NCBI RefSeq assembly: GCF_000315625.1
Contig: NW_005434446.1
Span: forward strand, 1-59,262
From: Guillardia theta CCMP2712
Lineage: Eukaryota; Protista; Cryptophyta
Length of the DNA: 59,262 nucleotides
Reading direction: 5' to 3'
Notes under the pieces: generated by a model
The model's database searches: none
The model's input: the letters and a program-made list of their open reading frames with translations, nothing else
What the model was told of the DNA's origin: nothing
Shown here: positions 3,752-37,098 of the stretch, in pieces
Position numbering within the stretch: the first letter of the stretch is position 1
Layout of the letters: each line of letters begins with the position of its first letter
Translations under genes and position numbers: made by a program

Positions 3752-5055
3752 GTGAGTTTATTAGAATGCTAGAATGTTGCTCGGCCTCGTTGTGGGCTTT
3801 TGCAATTTGATCCTAGTCTAAAGAGGCGCTCGAGCACTGGGAGTACACGGCCTACAATGCGAACCCTGCTTCTGAGGCGTCTTTCTACTCTCTACTTCTG
3901 CTGTCTTCTCTTGGCTTCCTCAGCCTCAGTCAGGAGAGTTGCCTCTCCTCACCTTGGCCTTCGGTCACCACCTAGTCTACCTCCATTCAGCTTCCTCAGC
4001 CTCAGTCAGAAGAGTTGCCTCTCCTCACCTTGGCCTTCGGTCGCCACCTACTCGTCTCCATTCAGCTTCCTCAGCTTCAGTCAGGAGAGTTGCCTCTCCT
4101 CACCTTGGCCTTCGGTCGCCTCCTACCTTCTCTCCTTACCTTGGGCTCAGCTCAAGCTCGGTACGGGCTCGCCCCGTCTTCTTCCTCGCCCTCGCCTTGC
4201 TCTTCCTCCATGTCTTCCTCTTCTTCGCCATCTTCCCTCATCTCCACTCGCAGTCGGTCCTTCTTGTCCACCTTCAGCGAGCAGGCCAGCACATGCATCT
4301 CTGCGAATTTACTCAGTGCTATGAACAGGAAGCTAAGAGATCGACGCTCTATGTCGTCGCTCTCCGCCTCCTGCTCAAGCTCAGCAGCTGCCGTTGCCCG
4401 TGGCGAGAACGCGCTGCCCCTCCTTGCCTTCTTGCTCTCTCCTTGCACGCGAGTCCAGCGCTTGCTCTGCAGCCACTTCCCCAGCTTCTCCTTGAGAACG
4501 TTGCGCCCAACTCCCTGCTCCTCTGGCATCTTCGCCCACTCTCCCAGCGACATGAACTCCAGGCTCCCCGGAGAGTAGAAGGTGTCGTGGAGGTTGCCAA
4601 CGGCCTTGTCCAGGACCAGCTTGATCGGCTCGCTCGTCCCCGCCTCGTTCAAAGAAGTTGCATCTTCGATGACTGCTGACAGCTCGCTGACGAGCTGCAT
4701 GTCCTCTTGGCTTGACGGAGATGCTGCCTCCATTGTGATCCTCTCCAGGTCTGTAAACTCCAGCCACTCTCCCTCGCTCTCCTCCTGTCGCTGCGCTGCG
4801 TCGCTGGTGCCCCGCTGACCAGCCGCCTCAGAGTCAGGCTCCTTGTCGAAGCCGACTGCTTCGAGCTTGGTTGCTGCGCCTTCGAGATAGAAGGGCAGCT
4901 CCTTCATCATGCGTCGAGCATCCTCCGTGGAGCCGAGGAGGATGCATAGCTTGGACCCGTTCCAGGACTTGGTGTTCAAATCCTCCTCCATGTCGATGCC
5001 TTCAACGTTGATCTCGAGCCTGTTAGCGATCTCCAACAAGACTCTCTTGACTCTT
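3716..5055 (-). mobile_element. Telomere-associated element copy C, 5'-truncated by a gypsy LTR
   Basis: Matches 955-~2277 until gactctt (5055), then switches to tgttg... Confidence 0.8.
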
Positions 5056-7088
5056 TGTTGTATACACAACACAGAGATTGTCAACGACACGAGTAAAGTA
5101 AGGATGAAGAAGATTGAGAAGCAGGAAATAGAAGTCTCTAAGTTTACTAGGAGGTAAACTACGCACAACCCCCACACTCACTGTGCATGCAAGTGGGGGA
5201 AATTCAGGAGGCCGTCCGCACGAGATGCGTCCGCCTATATAGGGAATATCCGGCAGAGTATCCGACGAGTATCCGAGGTTCCGGATCCTCATGGATACAA
5301 CATCGCTCCATCTGCGCTTGACAACTTAGTTCCAACTTGTCCTTCGCTCTTACCATGAGGAGATGAACGACAGGATTCAAAGTTCCACTTCGGACGAGTC
5401 GGAGGAGTCCAAGGCGTTGGAGGGTAAAGCTTGAAGAGCTTCACGTTCTTCGAATTGACGGATGAGTTCGCGAAGACCTGATTTCTTCTGCAATTCACGA
5501 GCAGGGAGCCAATTGTTCTCACTGACTTGATCATAGCCTGTCCACTTAACAAGGTACTGAATACCTCGACCGCGACGACGTTTGCTGAGGATGCTCTCGA
5601 TCTCGTATTCCAAGCCGTCTCTGGTGGCCAGAGGTTCGGGTGGTCGCTGGGGATCTTGATAGGCAGGGTCGCGCTCTGTATGCGGACGAAGCCACTTGAT
5701 GTTGATGACGGTGTTTCTGATCGATGCGAAGCGAGGAGAGACGTCGAGACGAACGGTGTTGTCTGAAACAAATTCCAGGATGCGGAAGGGACCAACGAAG
5801 CGAGGGTTGAGCTTCGAGGCGGCGTCGGGGATGTTGAGGTTGGCGGTAGAGAGCCAGACCAGATCTCCAACTTGATAGCGGCAGGGACGGCGGGCCTGCG
5901 CAAGGCGAGCTTCGGTGGCTCGCGCTGCAGCTTCGAGAGCAGCTCGGGCAGCTTCGGCGCTGACTTCGGTTGCTTCACGAATGGAGTCGAGGGTCTCGTC
6001 CTGATGATCGTCAGGTGAGGGCAGAGAGAGTTGTGTCCTGATAGGTTTGCCGAACATGACTTCGAAAGGGCTGGCACCGATGGGGCGGCGAACAGCGGAG
6101 TTTAGGTGAGTCTCCAGGATGGGGAGGTACCTATCCCAATCGGCTCGAGGATACTGCGTGGTGTAGATACGCAGAGCTTCGAGGACGACGGAGTTCATAC
6201 GCTCGGGTCGACCGTTGCTTTGAGGCATAAAAGGCGACGAATGCTTCACGTGAACGTTGAGCATCTTGAAGAGCGCGTTCCAGAATCTGGACGAAAAGAT
6301 GGCAGCGTTGTCGCTGATAAGGACTTGAGGAAGGCCTTGGGATCGAAACACGGTTTCGATGAATTTTTGAGCAGCTTGTTCAGACGTAATCGATTTACGG
6401 CAAGGGGTGAGATAAACTCGCCCTGTGAACTCGTCAATGAAGAGAAGAATTGCATCGTTCTTATCTCGAGTTCGTGGGAGTCCGGTCAGCAAGTCGAGAC
6501 TGACGACTTCGAAGCGTGTCGAGGGAACGGCGTGGGAATGAGGAGTACCCATTGGTCGTTGTCGATAAGATTTCCCTTGAAGACAATGCTGGCATGACAG
6601 GATGTAAAGCTCGGTATCTTTCCGAAGCTGGGGCCAATAAACAGTTGCTGCTAGCTGAAGGTAGGTTCTTGAAAACCCGAGGTGGGACTGAAGGTCGTGG
6701 GCGCGGAAGAGAACTTCTCGACGCAATGCTTGCGGAATGCACAGGCGGATGCGGCGCAGCGAATCTGTATAAAACAGAAGCTCATCATCCAGATGAAAAG
6801 AAGTGACGGAAGACTTGGCGCGGAGACGTTGGATAAGAGGACGACAGAAGTCGCACGTCTCGTAGGCGGCTTGAATCTGGTCCGACAAAGGCTGCAAGGC
6901 GCTGACGGTGAAGGCGAGCAAGAAGCCGTCCTCTTGACGGGAGAGTTGCTCGTGATGAGGAGCGACTGCAGTCGAGAGGGGAACTTCATCTTGACGGCTG
7001 AGAGCGTCGGGGACGACGTTCTGAGAACCTTTGACGTAACAGTACTCGGTGATTGCAAACTCGCTGAGCGTTTGAACTTGCGGCCAAC
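5056..7088 (-). mobile_element. 3' half of a Ty3/gypsy chromovirus-type LTR retrotransposon (putative short 3' LTR 5056-5167)
   Basis: TG at 5056 and CA at 5166-5167, with purine-rich gagtgtggggg just upstream of the LTR on the minus strand. The pol ORF carries integrase and chromodomain. Confidence 0.85.
5377..7088 (-). CDS. Gypsy Pol C-terminus: RNase H end, integrase (HHCC, DDE, GPF) and chromodomain; 5'-truncated
   Basis: NVVPDALSR; HDLQSHLG...CQHC; VSLDLL...ISDNA...PERMN; KLNPRFVGPFRI; YEIESILSKRRRGRGIQYLVKWTGY. Confidence 0.93.
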
Positions 7089-12726: not shown

Positions 12727-13350
12727 AAGGGACCTTGTGATACCCCTTGGTACATCGACAATCCCTCTCCATTGTGCTCCTTGGACTTGATGCCGAGTGA
12801 TCGCAACAATCGTGACACCTCCACATGCCTGTTGCATTCCCATATGTATTCATGGGGCAATCCGTGCATGCCGTATTCCCATGCCCCATCGAGTACTCCC
12901 CCATCTGACAATCATGGCAAAGCGATGACCCTGTAGCATTCACAAAGCTGCCCGCGGGGCAGTCGCGACATGCATAGGACCCGGCAGCACCTGCATAGCT
13001 GCCCGCGGGGCAGGGGACACACCGGGGCATCCCCATGGCATCCCCGTAGCTGCCCAGGGGGCAAGGGCTGCAGGCGGTGGAGCCATCCCCCGATGAGTAC
13101 TCCCCAATCCCACACTCATAACACCCAGACAGCCCCGTATCATTCCCAAAGCTGCCCTCGGGGCAGGGGACACACCGGGGCATCCCCATGGCATCCCCGT
13201 AGCTGCCCAGGGGGCAAGGGCTGCAGGCGGTGGAGCCATCCCCCGATGAGTACTCCCCAATCCCACACTCATAACACCCAGACAGCCCCGTATCATTCCC
13301 AAAGCTGCCCGCGGGGCATTTGTATCCCGGGACGTCAATGCAGCCATGAA
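12727..13350 (-). pseudogene. Cys-rich repeat protein fragment (GCC2/GCC3, ephrin-receptor-like), cut by the copia LTR
   Basis: CxPCPxGSY/F repeats with a ~150-bp internal tandem duplication. The frame runs into the LTR at KGYHKVPL and has an in-frame stop upstream. Confidence 0.75.
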
Positions 13351-28689: not shown

Positions 28690-29997
28690 TTGCAACGCCC
28701 GTTTATATGCGGTTTGGATAACAAGGATAAGGTCAGCAACAACCGCCAACCGATCGGCTGCAATCATAACCGCCGCCCCTCCCTGTTTTTTACCGGGATG
28801 ATGTTTATAAACCCTAGGGGATACCCACACCACCAAAAAAACATGTGCCGTGTAAAGACAATCACACACCACAAGAACAAACGCACACTCGCCGATCTTG
28901 ATCCTGTCCTCACCCCCAATGATGACATCAACCTCGATATATTCCAACCCCCAATCACACGATCGAAACACAACCCATGCAATGATCTTGCAATCGATTT
29001 CTTGACCGGTAAAATCACACTCGATGATATCATGATACAATCCATCGATCAATACCAGCCCAAACAGCAACACATGCAACAACACATGCAACAACACATG
29101 CAACAACACATGCAACAACACATGCAACAACACATGCAACAACACATGCAACAACACATGCAACAACACATGCAACAACACATGCAACAACACATGCAAC
29201 AACACATGCAACAACACATGCAACAACACATGCAACAACACATGCAACAACACAAACACAATCACAAAATGCACAGTCACAACACCATCGATCAGATCCC
29301 CATGCACATGCAATACTCAAGCGATCCCGAGCAAGACACCGAAACACACCACGATTACATCACCGGAATTGTGCCCAATCCCGATCCAGATCACGATCCA
29401 GATCACAATCCAGATCCAGATCCCGATTCACATCCCGATTCAGGTCTCGATTCACATCCCGATTCAGGTCTCGATTCACATCCCGATTCAGGTCTCGATT
29501 CACATCCCGATTCAGGTCTCGATTCAGGTCTCGATTCAGGTCTCGATTCAGGTCTCGATTCAGGTCTCGATTCAGGTCTCGATTCACATCCCGATTCAGG
29601 TCTCGATTCAGGTCTCGATTCAGGTCTCGATTCAGGTCTCGATTCAGGTCTCGATTCAGGTCTCGATTCAGGTCTCGATTCAGGTCTCGATTCAGGTCTC
29701 GATTCAGGTCTCGATTCAGGTCTCGATTCAGGTCTCGATTCAGGTCTCGATTCAGGTCTCGATTCAGGTCTCGATTCAGATCTCGATTCAGATCCCGATT
29801 CAGGTCTCGATTCAGGTCTCGATTCAGGTCTCGATTCAGGTCTCGATTCAGGTCTCGATTCAGGTCTCGATTCAGGTCTCGATTCAGATCCAAACACAGA
29901 TTCTGATTCTGACACAGATTCTGACACAGATTCCCATCCATTTTCCGATCAATTTTCCGATCCATTTTCCGATTCCGAACCCGAGACCCTCCAATGA
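28690..29997 (+). CDS. Hypothetical low-complexity protein with (QQHM)n and (DSGL)n repeats
   Basis: 435-codon ORF kept open through two 12-bp repeat expansions. Confidence 0.55.
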   Translation: MQRPFICGLDNKDKVSNNRQPIGCNHNRRPSLFFTGMMFINPRGYPHHQKNMCRVKTITHHKNKRTLADLDPVLTPNDDINLDIFQPPITRSKHNPCNDLAIDFLTGKITLDDIMIQSIDQYQPKQQHMQQHMQQHMQQHMQQHMQQHMQQHMQQHMQQHMQQHMQQHMQQHMQQHMQQHMQQHMQQHKHNHKMHSHNTIDQIPMHMQYSSDPEQDTETHHDYITGIVPNPDPDHDPDHNPDPDPDSHPDSGLDSHPDSGLDSHPDSGLDSHPDSGLDSGLDSGLDSGLDSGLDSGLDSHPDSGLDSGLDSGLDSGLDSGLDSGLDSGLDSGLDSGLDSGLDSGLDSGLDSGLDSGLDSGLDSDLDSDPDSGLDSGLDSGLDSGLDSGLDSGLDSGLDSDPNTDSDSDTDSDTDSHPFSDQFSDPFSDSEPETLQ

Positions 29998-30059: not shown

Positions 30060-30987
30060 CGTTCTCACAAGCCCGATCTGAGCCGCCCCGGACGTGATTC
30101 GCTGCATATGTGTAATACTAGTACCCCGCCATACCCTATAAAAAAACTGCACACAAAACACACACGCCCCTCTCCCCACCCTATACAGGACTCTACTCTT
30201 TGATGGCCTCGAAGTTCTTGCCCCAAAGGCTGTCCGCTATCGTTGCGTATATGTAATCCACACACGTTCTTTACTCCAACCCATACATTCACGCATATTT
30301 ATTTGTTCCGTACACAGGACATTTTGGTGGTCTCGAAGTTTGTGAGCGATTCATTGAAAGACTGCGTTCTCGCCATGCCGTTCTGAGCCGCCCCGGACGT
30401 AAATCGCTCCCCCCCAGGCTGTCCGGCGATTTGCTATTAGTTCCGTACACAGGACATTTTGGTGTTTGTGAGCGATTCATTGAAAGACTGCGTTCTCGCC
30501 ATGCCGTTCTGAGCCGCCCCGGACGTAAATCGCTCCCCCCCAGGCTGTCCGGCGATTTGCTATTAGTTCCGTACACAGGACATTTTGGTGTTTGTGAGCG
30601 ATTCATTGAAAGACTGCGTTCTCGCCATGCCGTTCTGAGCCGCCCCGGACGTAAATCGCTCCCCCCCAGGCTGTCCGCTGTCGTTGGATATGTGTAATAC
30701 TAGTACCCCGCCATACCCTATAAAAAAACTGCACACAAAACACACACGCCCCTCTCTCTCCCGTATAACAGTACAGGACTCTTTGTATCGTTGCGTATAT
30801 GTAATCCACACACGTTCTTTACTCCAACCCATACATTCACGCATACTTATTTGTTCCGTACACAGGACATTTTGGTGGTCTCGAAGTTTGTGAGCGATTC
30901 ATTGAAAGACTGCGTTCTCACCATGCCGTTCTGAGCCGCCCCGGACGTAAATCGCTCCCCCCCAGGCTGTCCGGCGATTTGCTATTA
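30060..30987. repeat. 126-bp tandem repeat within a larger ~550-600-bp-offset duplication at the island's right edge
   Basis: tgtgagcgattcattgaaagac at 30341, 30467, 30593 and ~30888. Confidence 0.9.
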
Positions 30988-31176: not shown

Positions 31177-34100
31177 ATGCCGTACAACTGCCGTGATTGC
31201 CAGGCAAGGAGCAGCTGCGATGAGATGCTGTTACCTTGAGTGACATGCTTGATGATGGAGATGTTTCCTTTGCTCCCCCGCATCTGATCCTTCCATCATT
31301 CAACTCCTTTCTTGGCGGCTCCTTCACTTCCTCCTAACACTTTTTTTTGACCTTCTGACTTGTGTGTCTCCAGATCGTGATCGAAAATGATACCAACGAC
31401 AGCACAAAATGCGTAATTTGAATAGCTTCCAGTAGGCGTCACCTGACTTTGAGTGTTTTACGTTCTGCCGTGAATTGCAATGTTGTTATTCGGAAGGCGG
31501 TAAGCATCAGTCTGTGCAGCATATGCTCAGGGAATGTTTCGCTGACATTGGTTTTGCTTCTTGTCTGTGTTTGGTGTCGGATGGATGGGTTGCTGGATCG
31601 GATAGGGGGTAAGTATCTTGATCAAAATATGCGGTCAGGGAACGATTAGACTGACATGTACTTTGCAATCTCTGTCGTTGCTGCTCGGACGGATTGAACT
31701 TGGGCCTGGTAGCATGTAAGTTATGATTATGAAATATGCGGTCAGGGGACGATATGGCTGACATGCATCTTGCAAATCTTATCGATTACTGCTCGGATGG
31801 ACTGTCGATGATGCTGGATAGTGGGTGAGTGACGAATATGTACCATGCGATCAGGGAACGATTGGCTGACATTTCGTTTTGCAATCTCTGTTGTTTCTGG
31901 TTGAATGGATGAAATTTGGGCTTGATAGTTTGTAAGTAGCATATGCTATGATGCGGTCAGAGGATGATTGGACTGACATTTTCTTTTGTGTATATGTCGG
32001 TATTTGCTCGAATGTACTGTGGATGGCGCGGTATAGTCGGTAAGTGACGATGATGAAAGATGTGGTCAGGGGATGATTGGACTGACATGTATTTTGCAAA
32101 TTCCTGGTTTTTCCTTGCTTGCATGGATTAAATTCGTCTTCATAGGAAGTAAGTGTCATATCATATGATGCGGTCAGGGAACGATAGACTGACATGTATT
32201 TTGCAAATTCCTGGTTTTTCCTTGCTTGCATGGATTAAATTCACCTTCGTAGCACGTAAGTGTCATATCATAATGATGCGCTCAGGGGACGATAGACTGA
32301 CATGTATTTTGCAAATTCCTGGTTTTTCCTTGCTTGCATGGATAAAATTCGCCTTCGTAGTTCGTAAGTGTCATGTCATATGATGTGCTCAGGGATCGAT
32401 TGGGCTGACATTCTTCGTTTGTTTCTCGGTTTCTCATTGGTTGGGATGTTGATTTGTCCGGACAGTCGGTAAGTGATGATTATGAAACATGCGGTCAGGG
32501 GACGATTTGACTGACATGCAATTTGCAATTTGATCGGTTATTGCTTGGATGGATGAAACTTGGGCCTGATAGTATGTAAGTGACGCTTATGAAACATGCT
32601 CTCAGGGAATAATTGGACTGACGTCTGTTTTGCAAATTCCTGGTTTTTCATTGTTTGCATGGATTAAATTCGTCTTTGTAGAAAGTAAGTGTCATATCAT
32701 ATGATGCGGTCAGGGAAAGATTGGCTGACATGTATTTCTGCAATCATGATGTTTTTTGGCTTGGACGAATTGGTGATGGGACTCGATAGCCGGTAAGTAT
32801 CTTGATTGAAACATGCGGTCAGGGGATGATTGGACTGAATTTGTTTTTCAAAATTCCTGGTTTTTCCTTGTTTCGTTCTTCATAGGGAGTAAGTGTCATA
32901 TCATATGATGTGCTCAGAGAATGATTGGCTGACATGTATTTTGCCATTCGGGTCTTTGCTGGCATGCTCTGCATTGCGGCTGTTTTTTATCTAGTGCTGC
33001 GTTTGCTACTACGACGATGAACCTGAAGATAAAAGGCAAGAACACATGTGCCGGCACTGCAAGGATCGACGTTCCTGCGTGCACAACCTTGAGCAAGATC
33101 TTGTATCGTCAAGACCCAGTAGGCAGGACGCCATCGCCAAGATCGAGAAGGTCCGCGAGCACGTCAACAACGTGGGGAAGCCCTTTGCCGAGAGACTGGA
33201 TCTAGTCAAGTGCCACTACATCTTCGGGATGCAAGAGATAGATACTTCTGCTGTCGAAGGAGTGAAGCAGCTCCTGTCGGGCGGGGAGCTCGGGAGCTGC
33301 TACAACAGAAAGAAGGGCACGCTCAACATGTCTTTGCAGACAGATAGGATGAAACGATATGTGATACGAGATCTGAGGATGAAGAGCCTGCCTCGCTGGA
33401 TCTCCAAGCTCGGCGTCGCTTTCAAAGTCATCGACGTGTCCGGTAACCCCAGCCTCTCCCGCCTTCCCTTGGACGAGCTCTGCAGCATGGCAAAGTCAAG
33501 ATGGTGGAACATGAGACCTAGTCTGCAGGAGGTCAAGTGTGAGAGCTGCGTCAGGCTGCAGCTGCCTCCCCCTGAGATCGCCAGTCAGGGAGGGGCAGCT
33601 GCTTTCACGTACCTGCAGAGTGTCAAGAGAGACAGCGAGGCGAACAAGCGGATCAACCTCATCCTCATAGGCAACGGAGAGGCAGGCAAGACGAGCGTGC
33701 TGAGAGCTCTGAGGTCAGACAAGGACAAGGCGGACAAGATCGAGGTAGACAGAAGGACGATCGGGATAGACCTGCACGAGTGGAAGCCTGAGGACGCTGA
33801 CGGGCTGACGTTTGACGTGATGGACTTCGGGGGGCAGCAGATCTACGCCAAGACGAACCAGTACTTCATCGTGAGGCGGGCCTTGTACCTGCTGGTGTGG
33901 AGCGTGAGGGCGAAGCGAGACAAGGAGAGCAACGAGGATGGAGGGGAAGGCATGGAGGAGCTGAAGAAGATGATCTCTACATGGCTGCAAGCTACGCAAG
34001 CGCGAGTGCCGGGAGCGAGCGTGTTGCTCGTAGTAACGCACATTGATCTTGCCGGGGAGAGCGAGGTGACGGATCAGTGTGAGGAGGTGAAGGCATGTGT

Positions 34101-37098
34101 GGAAGAGGAGCTGAAGAAGATGGCAGAGGAAAACGATGAGAACATCCTGCCGTTACATGTGATCAACGGAGGCGAGAGCTTCCGGGTGAACTGTCTTGAG
34201 GGACAGGGAGTGGAGGAGCTGCGGCGATCTGTGTGTATGACTGCAAAAGAGCTGCTGTGGTGGGAGGAAAGAATCCCTGGACCTTATCTGAGACTGAGAG
34301 AGGCTGTGGAGAAGCGAAAGTCGGGGTCTGTCTCGTACGTCAAGGTAGAGGAGTACAAGGAGATGTTGAGAGAGTCAGGGGTCAACGAGAAAGAGCACAA
34401 GGTGGTGACAAGCTTCTTGCACGACATGGGCGTGCTCAAGTACTTTGGTCATGAGCTGAGTGCCGATGAAAGCAAGAAAGACCAAGGCAAGTACTCCGTC
34501 GAGGACACGGTCTTCATCGATCCCGTGTGGATGATCGACGTGTTCAAGGGCGTGATGCGACATGACTGGGAGCATCTGCTCGACTTCTTCCAGCTGGACC
34601 CAACCAAGTCCAAGAAGACGAAGAAGCTGCTGCACCTGGGTATCATAGACGAGGACATGTTGGAGTACTTGTGGCCCCAGCAAGGTAGGGACTTCTGGCG
34701 CAATGCGAAGACAGACAAGACATCAAGATCGAAAGAGGTAGGCTTTATCAAGAGCCATGTGGAGGTGCAGGAGGCGGTGGCTCTGCTTCGGGGCTGCGAT
34801 CTGGCGCACTTCCTGAGCGTGGGCATGAAGGACTTGAAGGATACAGACAACAAGAGCAGAGAGCTGCTGTGTCCCGGCATCATCCCGCCGTTCACGCATG
34901 AGCACAAGCGAGCAGTGACGGACAAGGACAAGCAGTCTCTGTGCGCATCTGTCGAGTGCGAGTACAACATCTTCCCCGCAGGCTTCATCGACAGGCTGGT
35001 CGTGCTGTGCGCTGCTCGACACTTTGAGGTAGACTGCAGCGGCTCTATGGCGGTGATGAAGGGCTGGGGCCGAACGCTGCTGGTGAGATGGCGAGAAGAC
35101 AATGACAAGCACGTGCTGAGAGCTGATGCGTCGACGAGGCAGCAGATCGAGAACTTGCAAGAGGACTTGAGGCGACTCGAGGCATTCTTCCCGGGGATGA
35201 AGCGAAGGAGAAGCGACGAAGAGAGCTCAGGCAAACAGGCCGTGCAGGTAGGGATCTTCACGCAAGGAGAGAGGTCAAGAGCATGTGGGCTGGATATTGA
35301 AAGAAAGTTGAAGGAGCTTTACAAGGCAGAGAACCTCCCTCTAGGTCTTACTTGTCAGATTCATCCGTGTGACGAACGTGGAGGTGCTGTTGATGAATGT
35401 CTCGTGAACATCTTGTGTATATCGACGGAGTGTGTTGATGAGCATGGAGCCATGCAAGGAGAAAGTAGCTTCAGCAAGCTATGGAACAGATTGACAACGA
35501 GCAAAGCAATTATCATCCCCGTCGTATTGACAGACTACTACGACAAGCAGATCAAGCCGAGGAACAGGTTCAACCATTGGTGGCCGCAGGAGATACAAGG
35601 GATGGAGCGATACCGGATCTTTCACGAGTACAAGAAGCAAGATGAAGTATCGAATGATGAATTATCGAAAGACAAAGTATCCGTATATGAAAAATCTATG
35701 CAAACATTGTACGACGGCGTCATCAAGAAGCTGCATCAGGGACGAGGAAGCTTCGAAGACTTGTACGAGGTCACCAGTCAGAACGAGCTTCTGTGCCAAG
35801 CTTGCTTGCATGATAGGTCTGAGTCTCCACCTGCCTCACAAGGCGATCGAGTCGTGGGCAGGTTTGATTTGTCGAAGATCAAGGAAGCGCTAGAAGGAGA
35901 AACCAAGGGTATGACGACATCCATTCAGCAAGGGTTGGAGCAAGAAGATGTCATAAAACACAAGATTATGATCAAAGCAATCACTTGCACAAGGGGTCAT
36001 ACGACAACCGTGAAGGAGGTGCTGGCGTTCAATGGCTCGAGCTCCCCGTGTCCGTCTTGCTTGAAGGACAAGAGAGTCCCGCACTTCTTCAGCCGACCCA
36101 CGTGCTTGAGCATGCTCGCTCGTGACCTGACGGCTAAGATTTACTGCGATCAATGTCAGAGGGAGGTGGACGTGCTGGACGTCACGCCGCCGCAGGTGTT
36201 CTTGAGCTACCAGTGGGGGCACGACAACTCGACGCAGAAGATGGTGAGGGATGTGAAGCGGGGGATCGAGGAGCAGACGAGCCTGCAGTGCTGGTTCGAC
36301 GTGGAGGGAGGGATCAACCCCGGGGAAGATCACATGCAGAAGATGGAGCAGGGAGTGTCTCGCTGCGAGGTGTTTGTGGTCTTTATGAGCGACAAGTACG
36401 TCAAGAGCGCCAACTGCAGGAGGGAGTTTGCTCGGGCGTGTGAGGCAGGGAAGTACATCATCCCTGTGCTGGTGCCGGTGCTGTTTCAAGAAGACAAGGC
36501 GAAGTCAGAGTCAGGCTGGAAGGGCGGCAACGGGGATGAAGACTGGTGGAAGAGGATCGCTGATATCGAGGGAAGCGAAGGAGCTGGGCAAGAGGTCAAG
36601 GTCGACTGGAAGTATCTCGCGTCATTCCCGAGGACTTTGAGGCTTCAAGCTGAGGTGCAAGGAGCAGAGGTGCGGGTGAGGGCAGGGCTGAAGGAGCTGG
36701 TGGCGGCTGTGCAGGCACGAGTTTACAGGGGAAGCGTGGTCTGGCACGAAACCATCGCAGACTCTTGTTCTAAGACACCTGAGAAGAAGGGACAGGTACA
36801 CGGAGATCGTGAACTGGGGAGCTCGCGGGGGGAGGAGGTAGATCGTAGGAAGAAAGAGCAGCTGGTAGAAGGGCTGGGAACAAAGGAGGCACTAGGCTCT
36901 GGGGGCGCACAAGAGGCGGAGCTTGCGGAGGCAAGGAGGGAGGCGGAGCGGGCAGAGACCTCGGGCACCAAGGGTCAGGGAGAGAGGAAGAGCTGGGAAA
37001 GCGCTGCTAGGGGAGGTGAGGGTGAGATTGACAAGAGGAGTCTCCAAGGGCGTCAGAGGGAGACGGTGAAGACCTCAGCTTGTTGTGTCGTGAGTTAG
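31177..37098 (+). CDS. ROCO protein: Cys/His-rich N-terminus, short LRR, Roc GTPase, COR, Zn motifs, TIR, CaaX; predicted ~1403 aa (exons 31177-31203, 31374-31412, 14 microexons, 32995-37098)
   Basis: IDVSGNPSLSRLP...PPPEIASQG; GNGEAGKTS; TIGID; DFGGQ; VVTHID; COR FLHDMG...VFIDPVW; TIR VFLSYQWG...CWFD...CRREF; ends CCVVS. The 5' exon model comes from splice signals and phase only. Confidence 0.88.
31497..32888 (+). other. Array of 14 three-nucleotide microexons separated by homologous ~93-106-nt introns
   Basis: AG-NNN-GTRAG at 31497, 31606, 31713, 31822, 31929, 32037, 32146, 32253, 32361, 32466, 32573, 32682, 32790 and 32886, with a CTGAC-type branch motif in every intron. Confidence 0.85.

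Follow-up and report, generated by a model that had tools for sequence, protein, structure and literature searches.

Introns that end at single-codon exons in a Guillardia theta Roc-COR-TIR gene probably use a distant branch point

Introduction

How does a spliceosome include exons that are only one codon long? Few tasks in splicing are harder than a 3-nt internal exon, because the acceptor and the next donor nearly touch. The question is raised by a gene of the cryptophyte Guillardia theta CCMP2712, located in a 59,262-nt stretch of DNA (contig NW_005434446.1, positions 1 to 59,262 of the forward strand), hereafter called the window. The gene contains a tandem array of 14 introns at positions 31500–32994, which follow one another at intervals of a single codon, and a large last exon, the long frame of which encodes a product with Roc, COR-A, and TIR domains. 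A free-living alga thus solves the problem of the 3-nt exon 14 to about 20 times running within a single gene, and several paralogs repeat the solution with the same layout. Here, we show that the 3-nt exons are joined in RNA, and that the array introns share a CTGAC motif far upstream of an acceptor that is preceded by a zone free of AG. We propose that each intron ending at a one-codon exon, a spliceosomal intron of the intron-defined type, probably has its branch point some 59 nt 5′ of the acceptor.

Results

Single-codon exons are spliced into RNA

The array has a period of about 108 nt and is parsed by its donors into 14 GT..AG units, which are separated by spacers of exactly 3 nt. The first unit lies directly 3′ of a further triplet, GCG (31497–31499), at which a fifteenth intron, located 5′ of the array, ends. 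In order, the 14 triplets read GCG GGG CAT TGG TTT TCG GAA CAC TTC TCG TAT AAA CCG GGA, corresponding to A G H W F S E H F S Y K P G. All boundaries are in phase 0 relative to the long open frame that begins at 32995.

The RNA evidence consists of assembled contigs of public runs (X1 and X2), the RNA origin of which is shown by their splice joints, and of four reads from the raw run X16. One X1 contig reads ..TGC-GCG-GGG-CAT-TGG, keeps intron 4, continues with TTT-TCG-GAA-CAC-TTC-TCG-TAT, keeps intron 11, and joins AAA to CCG. This chain is based on the contig letters CGGGGCAT and TCGGAACACTTCTC, and on the joint from 32684 to 32790. A second contig joins GGA (32886–32888) to 32995, and X2 contains the same two joints or loose ends. 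Twelve of the 15 introns are seen removed, and introns 4, 11, and 13 appear only as retained among the contigs listed. The 3-nt microexons are therefore genuine exons that are included together, with up to seven neighbors joined within a single contig. Since introns 5–10 are gone while introns 4 and 11 remain, the introns are removed without a strict order. The joining of neighboring microexons in the same RNA rules out their mutual exclusion, which a first-pass annotation of the sequence had already considered the less likely option.

Contig joints between repeat units, and one joint that goes back, were considered as lariats or exon skipping and rejected, as none starts at a branch adenine or ends at a donor. 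We read these joints as repeat or paralog effects; the 1189-nt joint resembling a skip includes additional letters from a paralog. Contigs with loose ends at 31499, 31608, 32576, and 32989 match the window over an exon or intron, beyond which they carry different codon chains (such as GGG AAA TAT TGC TGC followed by GTAAGA...). They look like transcripts of near-identical paralogs located outside the window. The microexon triplets vary widely from unit to unit, and the splice signals flanking them are conserved. None of the 65 triplets in the window (31497–32888) and the paralog arrays is a stop codon, an outcome with a chance probability of about 0.04.

A conserved motif far upstream of the acceptor

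The motif CTGAC is present in 13 of the 14 window units, and the 93-nt unit has CTGAA. Its adenine is positioned 44–46 nt from the donor G and 57–62 nt from the acceptor G, or 47 nt in the case of the 93-nt unit, in agreement with the distances of about 44 and 60 nt given by the first-pass annotation. The proteins closest to the gene product are three G. theta CCMP2712 paralogs with 86, 77, and 63% identity, followed by Hanusia phi transcripts; the best relatives of the large-exon product are GUITHDRAFT_121310, GUITHDRAFT_108245, and GUITHDRAFT_116126. We fetched the three CCMP2712 paralog loci (L001, L002, and L003). Each has such an array upstream of a large exon, and L001 has a second array in front of another gene. 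The five arrays comprise 73 curated introns, of which 48 end with ATAG and 50 begin with GTAAGT.

The adenine of the motif is the sole invariant internal column in an alignment of 67 long introns (75–130 nt) from the five arrays. Nearly invariant columns are those of the donor, of CT and the final C in the motif, and of the acceptor AG; the motif positions are C in 96%, T in 99%, G in 93%, A in 100%, and C in 88% of the introns. The conserved block reaches beyond the motif, from about 25 nt upstream of the adenine to 3 nt past it. Among 68 long introns, the median distance from donor to adenine is 46 nt and that from adenine to acceptor 59 nt (interquartile range 57–61 nt). Insertions and deletions have spread the latter distance up to 114 nt, and its minimum is 44 nt.

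The pyrimidine tract of the long introns adjoins the motif rather than the acceptor. The pyrimidine fraction is mostly above 0.5 from A+5 to A+31, with peaks of 0.7–0.9, and falls mostly to 0.2–0.4 in the last 26 or so nucleotides, which are G-rich with the consensus ..TCGGATGG..GGGCTGGATAG. This G-rich block is present in all arrays, in the place usually taken by the pyrimidine tract, and might act as a splicing enhancer or bind a protein.

Judged by its sequence context, CTGAC is by far the best branch-point candidate. The adenine is invariant, the pyrimidine tract is adjacent, the AG-free zone described below starts exactly at the motif, short-form relatives of the introns combine the same motif with a nearby AG, and there is no strong alternative near the acceptor. 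The core motif occurs within the window only in this array, and is otherwise found in tandem arrays of paralogous Roc-COR-TIR-type genes. This distribution, in the window and the paralog loci covered, led us to reject introner elements, which are near-identical copies dispersed in unrelated genes. A metagenome scan with the pattern of the unit returned four contigs with one site each and no array, the number expected by chance. One 165-nt intron of L001 (3479–3643) contains CTGAC twice and an AG-free stretch of 119 nt, as though two units had merged following loss of the microexon between them.

The zone between motif and acceptor is kept free of AG

No AG occurs from A+7 to the acceptor in the 14 window introns (710 nt), as the first-pass annotation had claimed, and mononucleotide shuffles of the zone contain 25.4 ± 4.0 AG (5000 shuffles, minimum 11). 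The ratio of observed to expected AG is 0.0, and those of the other fifteen dinucleotides are 0.28–2.11. All 57 long introns together hold 2 AG, both in the form GAG, against 117.5 ± 8.5 expected. The few AG that remain past the motif adenine are all located no more than 6 nt from it. In the sequence preceding the motif, AG is depleted only slightly (observed/expected 0.62), so the exclusion zone begins at CTGAC.

Because the units are duplicates of one another, we also counted the substitutions that the zone has absorbed. The window zones have a mean identity of 56% between units and require a minimum of 98 substitutions by parsimony. As 13% of the possible substitutions create an AG, the chance that none survives is P ~1e-6 in the window and 4e-13 in all long introns. 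These results support the view, also held by the first-pass annotation, that selection maintains splicing, since the AG-free zone, the invariant branch adenine, and the strong donors persist across five diverged arrays. The slot where an ordinary acceptor would fall, 9–19 nt past the adenine, contains CAA in 10 of the 14 window introns, as noticed earlier, but in only 12 of 54 paralog introns.

Intron form is linked to the size of the downstream exon

The AG-free stretch measures 50–60 nt in the array introns and 12–26 nt in ordinary ones. Ordinary introns nearby have 12–26 nt between the adenine and AG in a small sample, a range that agrees with the 20 nt or so suggested previously. The sample includes the RNA-supported intron 31204–31373, where the distance is 15 nt.

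The five arrays also contain five short introns of 53–59 nt, in which the adenine is 12–13 nt from AG. They are located before the 87- and 81-nt exons of L001, at two sites in the second L001 array, and at the last intron of L003, in every case in front of a large exon. The short form is found in 5 of 9 introns that precede large exons and in 0 of 64 that precede microexons. The first-pass annotation had tied the long form to introns following a microexon; this assignment has to be reversed, because microexon-following introns in front of the 81- and 87-nt exons are short, and it is the exon downstream of the intron that matters.

Larger in-frame exons of 87 and 81 nt are embedded in the L001 arrays (4141–4227 and 5234–5314, and in the second array at 12982 and from 13457 onward). 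They are rich in cysteine, with C-x2-C-like motifs that resemble CRDCQ and CRHCK of the window gene, and each follows an intron of 53–59 nt.

Discussion

A proposed mechanism for single-codon exons

We hypothesize that the module formed by the GTAAGT donor, about 45 nt, CTGAC, and a T-rich tract of about 25 nt would suffice for U1 and U2 to assemble on the intron. The first usable AG downstream would serve as the acceptor and would be chosen late. If the first usable AG is taken, the approximately 55 nt in between must stay AG-free. The first-AG scanning model of 3′ splice-site choice is reportedly due to Smith, Chu and Nadal-Ginard. The AG-free zone, a G-rich spacer and not a pyrimidine tract, would separate U2 on one intron by about 60 nt from the U1 site of the next, which starts 3 nt past the acceptor. 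The spacer would thereby replace the separation usually provided by the body of an exon, and neighboring introns could be removed independently and in any order, each leaving one codon behind. That the spacer relieves a steric clash is plausible. The 44-nt floor of the adenine-to-acceptor distance and the missing tract at the acceptor fit this model, and the short members of the intron family are found solely in front of large exons.

Several observations weigh against the use of the distant branch point. No lariat junction is present among the RNA contigs and the four raw reads. About 11 introns, mostly from L001 and one from the window, carry TTGAT with its adenine 13 nt from the acceptor; this is an ordinary distance, so TTGAT could be used in place of CTGAC. 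Four of the nine introns preceding large exons are long as well, so microexons are not alone in being preceded by the long form. The control sample of ordinary introns is small. The association of intron form with exon size (Fisher test, 8e-6) is overstated, because the units are tandem duplicates and their counts are not independent. In addition, the rule that introns before microexons are long is partly definitional, as an AG near the motif would produce a short intron and an exon of about 50 nt.

Alternative explanations

The branch point in use might instead be a weak motif near the acceptor, TTGAT or TGAAT about 13 nt upstream, with CTGAC conserved for another reason, for example as part of a conserved 35-nt element or as a relic of a short intron in the ancestor. 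The TTGAT copies have exactly the spacing of the short-form introns, and the conservation around CTGAC does extend past the motif. We nevertheless regard this explanation as unlikely. Nine of the 14 window introns lack any YTNAY within 8–40 nt of the acceptor, and among the 68 long introns even this loose pattern is found in 36, against 31 expected, and the strict CTRAY in 3, against 5.3 expected. The last 26 nt have no pyrimidine tract, and AG is avoided as far as 55 nt upstream, up to CTGAC, which a near branch point would not need. Tandem duplication of an A-poor unit could also have produced the long distance and the lack of AG as by-products, without any role for the 3-nt exons. All units do derive from one ancestor, their length of about 108 nt is inherited, and long introns precede large exons in four cases. 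The zone is also A-poor (14–15% A). Against this explanation, the observed-to-expected ratio of AG in the zone is 0.00–0.02, whereas those of AA, AC, and AT are 0.56–2.11. The zone has diverged to 50–56% identity through at least 98–186 substitutions, yet no usable AG has arisen, and the distance keeps its 44-nt floor despite insertions and deletions that spread it from 44 to 114 nt. By-products of duplication are therefore an improbable explanation of the architecture.

A third possibility concerns RNA structure. According to the first-pass annotation, the motif is the 3′ arm of a TCAG...CTGAC stem, and the resulting hairpin could sequester the branch point and tune microexon inclusion. The complementarity is real: TCAG is positioned 12–13 nt upstream of CTGA in all 14 window introns, and 80% of the cells pair across the 67 aligned introns. 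Signs of a selected structure did not emerge from the same data. The 67 introns contain 0 compensatory changes, every departure from pairing being an unpaired cell, and the covariation score of 0.023 is below the shuffled mean of 0.032. The 5′ arm is kept in 37 of the 68 long introns (2 of 13 in L002 and 4 of 10 in L003) and lost in 31 in which CTGAC remains; overall, CTGAC is kept in 54 of 68, in addition to near variants. Folding is weak, as the minimum-energy fold contains the stem in just 2 of the 14 window introns, the pair probability of the stem is at most 0.17 in 13 of the 14, and whole-intron z-scores range from -2.3 to +1.05 with an average of about 0. The same arm is found in short-form introns. 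A lone chance TCAG in the ancestral unit, subsequently inherited, would be enough to explain the complementarity, and a tuning hairpin is thus a very remote prospect.

Structure between the branch point and the acceptor can shorten the effective distance in yeast. We rejected a selected structure of this type in the array introns, as the z-score of the branch-to-acceptor region averages -0.06 against dinucleotide shuffles (n=65). The effective distance of 13.7 nt does not differ significantly from 12.5 nt in shuffles, and shortening beyond the effect of base composition is not supported. Small nucleolar RNAs (snoRNAs) or other RNA families in the conserved 5′ half of the unit were also dismissed: an Rfam search (E <= 1) gave one weak sub-threshold match, which lies outside the array, and the spacing of about 30 nt from ATGATG to CTGA is too short for a cluster of C/D snoRNAs.

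Comparison with known splicing architectures

The proposed use of a distant branch point has established counterparts. Distant branch points with AG-dinucleotide exclusion zones are known from human genes (Gooding et al. 2006, PMC1431707). As in the arrays, the branch motif and the adjacent pyrimidine tract of the human introns are far from the acceptor, the sequence in between is AG-free, the first usable AG is taken, and the tolerated exceptions are AGs very near the branch and GAG. The human cases are scattered and tied to alternative or mutually exclusive exons, whereas the cryptophyte introns are apparently intron-defined, follow one another 14–22 times in one gene, and have a zone of about 55 nt of near-constant length with a G-rich spacer. 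The human examples were reportedly picked by Gooding and colleagues for AG-free zones of about 100 nt, and the cryptophyte zone is shorter.

Vertebrate neural microexons have a predicted branch-to-acceptor median of 45 nt, compared with 34 nt, and the longer distance has been proposed to give room for spliceosome assembly (Randazza et al. 2026 preprint, PMC12871342). The architecture of microexons dependent on SRRM3/4 has also been described (bioRxiv 10.1101/2024.09.17.613571). Both systems combine very short exons that follow an extended branch-to-acceptor distance with strong donors. The vertebrate shift is modest and tied to UGC motifs and the animal factor SRRM4, whereas the arrays have 3-nt exons and an approximately fourfold shift in every intron. 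The array microexons, in contrast to the neural ones, appear to be constitutively co-included.

Two further systems share single elements of the layout. Recursive splice sites, or ratchet points (AG/GTAAGT), occur in long introns of Drosophila and vertebrates; there too, a consensus donor lies almost next to the acceptor, and removal of a long stretch proceeds in steps. At all 14 sites of the array, however, 3 nt lie between AG and GT and are kept in the mRNA as a codon, and the contigs do not suggest an obligatory 5′-to-3′ order of removal. Exons 2 and 3 of alpha-tropomyosin exclude each other sterically, and have a distant branch point and a short donor-to-branch distance, as do the array introns with their 44–46 nt. 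Unlike those exons, neighboring microexons are joined in one RNA here, and the genome splices introns of 47–59 nt.

The kind of architecture is thus known. What is new is its occurrence in a protist in an extreme and uniform form, repeated serially around single-codon exons. A search of a literature collection found no paper linking Guillardia with microexons or describing runs of 3-nt exons. The arrays offer a natural replicate series for questions mostly studied in animals and yeast: how much distance is needed from the branch point to the next donor (with a floor of about 44 nt), whether the acceptor is simply the first AG, and whether the pyrimidine tract functions beside the branch point and not beside AG.

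The arrays might also serve as a splicing-based diversifier that provides an immune-type Roc-COR-TIR receptor with combinatorial N-terminal peptides. The introns are in phase 0, their signals are interchangeable, and each microexon is a single codon, so a donor could be spliced to any acceptor further downstream without loss of the frame. If the diversifier existed, the design with a distant branch point and an AG-free zone would allow each 3-nt exon to be included or skipped regardless of the others. At this locus, the contigs show co-inclusion only; as they are few and assembled, rare skipping forms might have escaped them. We consider this function doubtful.

The arrays have consequences for gene annotation. 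The public model of the nearest paralog, GUITHDRAFT_121310 (L001 5956–6100), starts with MYFAIR, its ATG lying within the last intron of the array and just past the branch motif. Public models of the family therefore miss the microexon array and the true N-terminus, and annotation of such genes needs microexon-aware RNA evidence.

Other features of the locus

The coordinates of the gene are given in Table 1. The first intron was placed by means of an X2 contig joint from 31199 to 31370 with 4 ambiguous bases.

Table 1. Exons and introns of the window gene. Branch adenines are predicted from the motif.
Feature	Positions	Strand	Length (nt)	Predicted branch A	A to acceptor (nt)	RNA evidence and remarks
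Exon 1	31177..31203	+				ATG start, MPYNCRDCQ; ends at GC donor; frame read from the sequence
GC-AG intron	31204..31373	+	170		15	ordinary intron with CTGAC; internal control
Exon 2	31374..31412	+	39			IVIENDTNDSTKC; ..TGC joined straight to GCG GGG CAT TGG in X1 contig
Intron before first microexon	31413..31496	+	84	31446	50	GTAATT donor, AAG acceptor; CTGAC; sole AG past A is GAG, 6 nt downstream; removal seen in X1 contig
Microexons 1–7	31497-99, 31606-08, 31713-15, 31822-24, 31929-31, 32037-39, 32146-48	+	3 each
Microexons 8–14	32253-55, 32361-63, 32466-68, 32573-75, 32682-84, 32790-92, 32886-88	+	3 each
Intron 1	31500..31605	+	106	31545	60	removed in X1 contig
Intron 2	31609..31712	+	104	31654	58	removed in X1 contig
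Intron 3	31716..31821	+	106	31761	60	removed in X1 contig
Intron 4	31825..31928	+	104	31869	59	GTGAGT donor; retained in listed X1 contig, no joint listed
Intron 5	31932..32036	+	105	31976	60	removed in X1 contig
Intron 6	32040..32145	+	106	32085	60	removed
Intron 7	32149..32252	+	104	32192	60	removed
Intron 8	32256..32360	+	105	32300	60	removed
Intron 9	32364..32465	+	102	32408	57	removed; also TTGAT 13 nt from acceptor
Intron 10	32469..32572	+	104	32514	58	removed
Intron 11	32576..32681	+	106	32621	60	retained in listed contigs, no joint listed
Intron 12	32685..32789	+	105	32728	61	GT..AG joint 32684 to 32790 in X1 and X2
Intron 13	32793..32885	+	93	32838	47	CTGAA; retained in listed X1 contig
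Intron 14 (last)	32889..32994	+	106	32932	62	precedes large exon; T-run right before CTAG acceptor; joint 32888 to 32995 in X1; X2 loose end at 32888 runs on into large-exon start
Large last exon	32995..37098	+				open from 32995 (CCVCYYDD..); Roc, COR-A, TIR

None of six open reading frames of the window was present in the protein collection in an exact look-up. The GC-AG first intron begins as CAG/GCAAGG, and the second gene on L001 starts alike, with MPRNCQDCK followed by GCAAGG. Two stretches upstream of the window gene (29061–29973 and 30338–30677) contain long perfect or near-perfect 12-nt tandem repeats, CAACACATGCAA in 15.6 copies and GATTCAGGTCTC in 39.6 copies, together with a 126-nt repeat present in 2.7 copies that are 100% identical.

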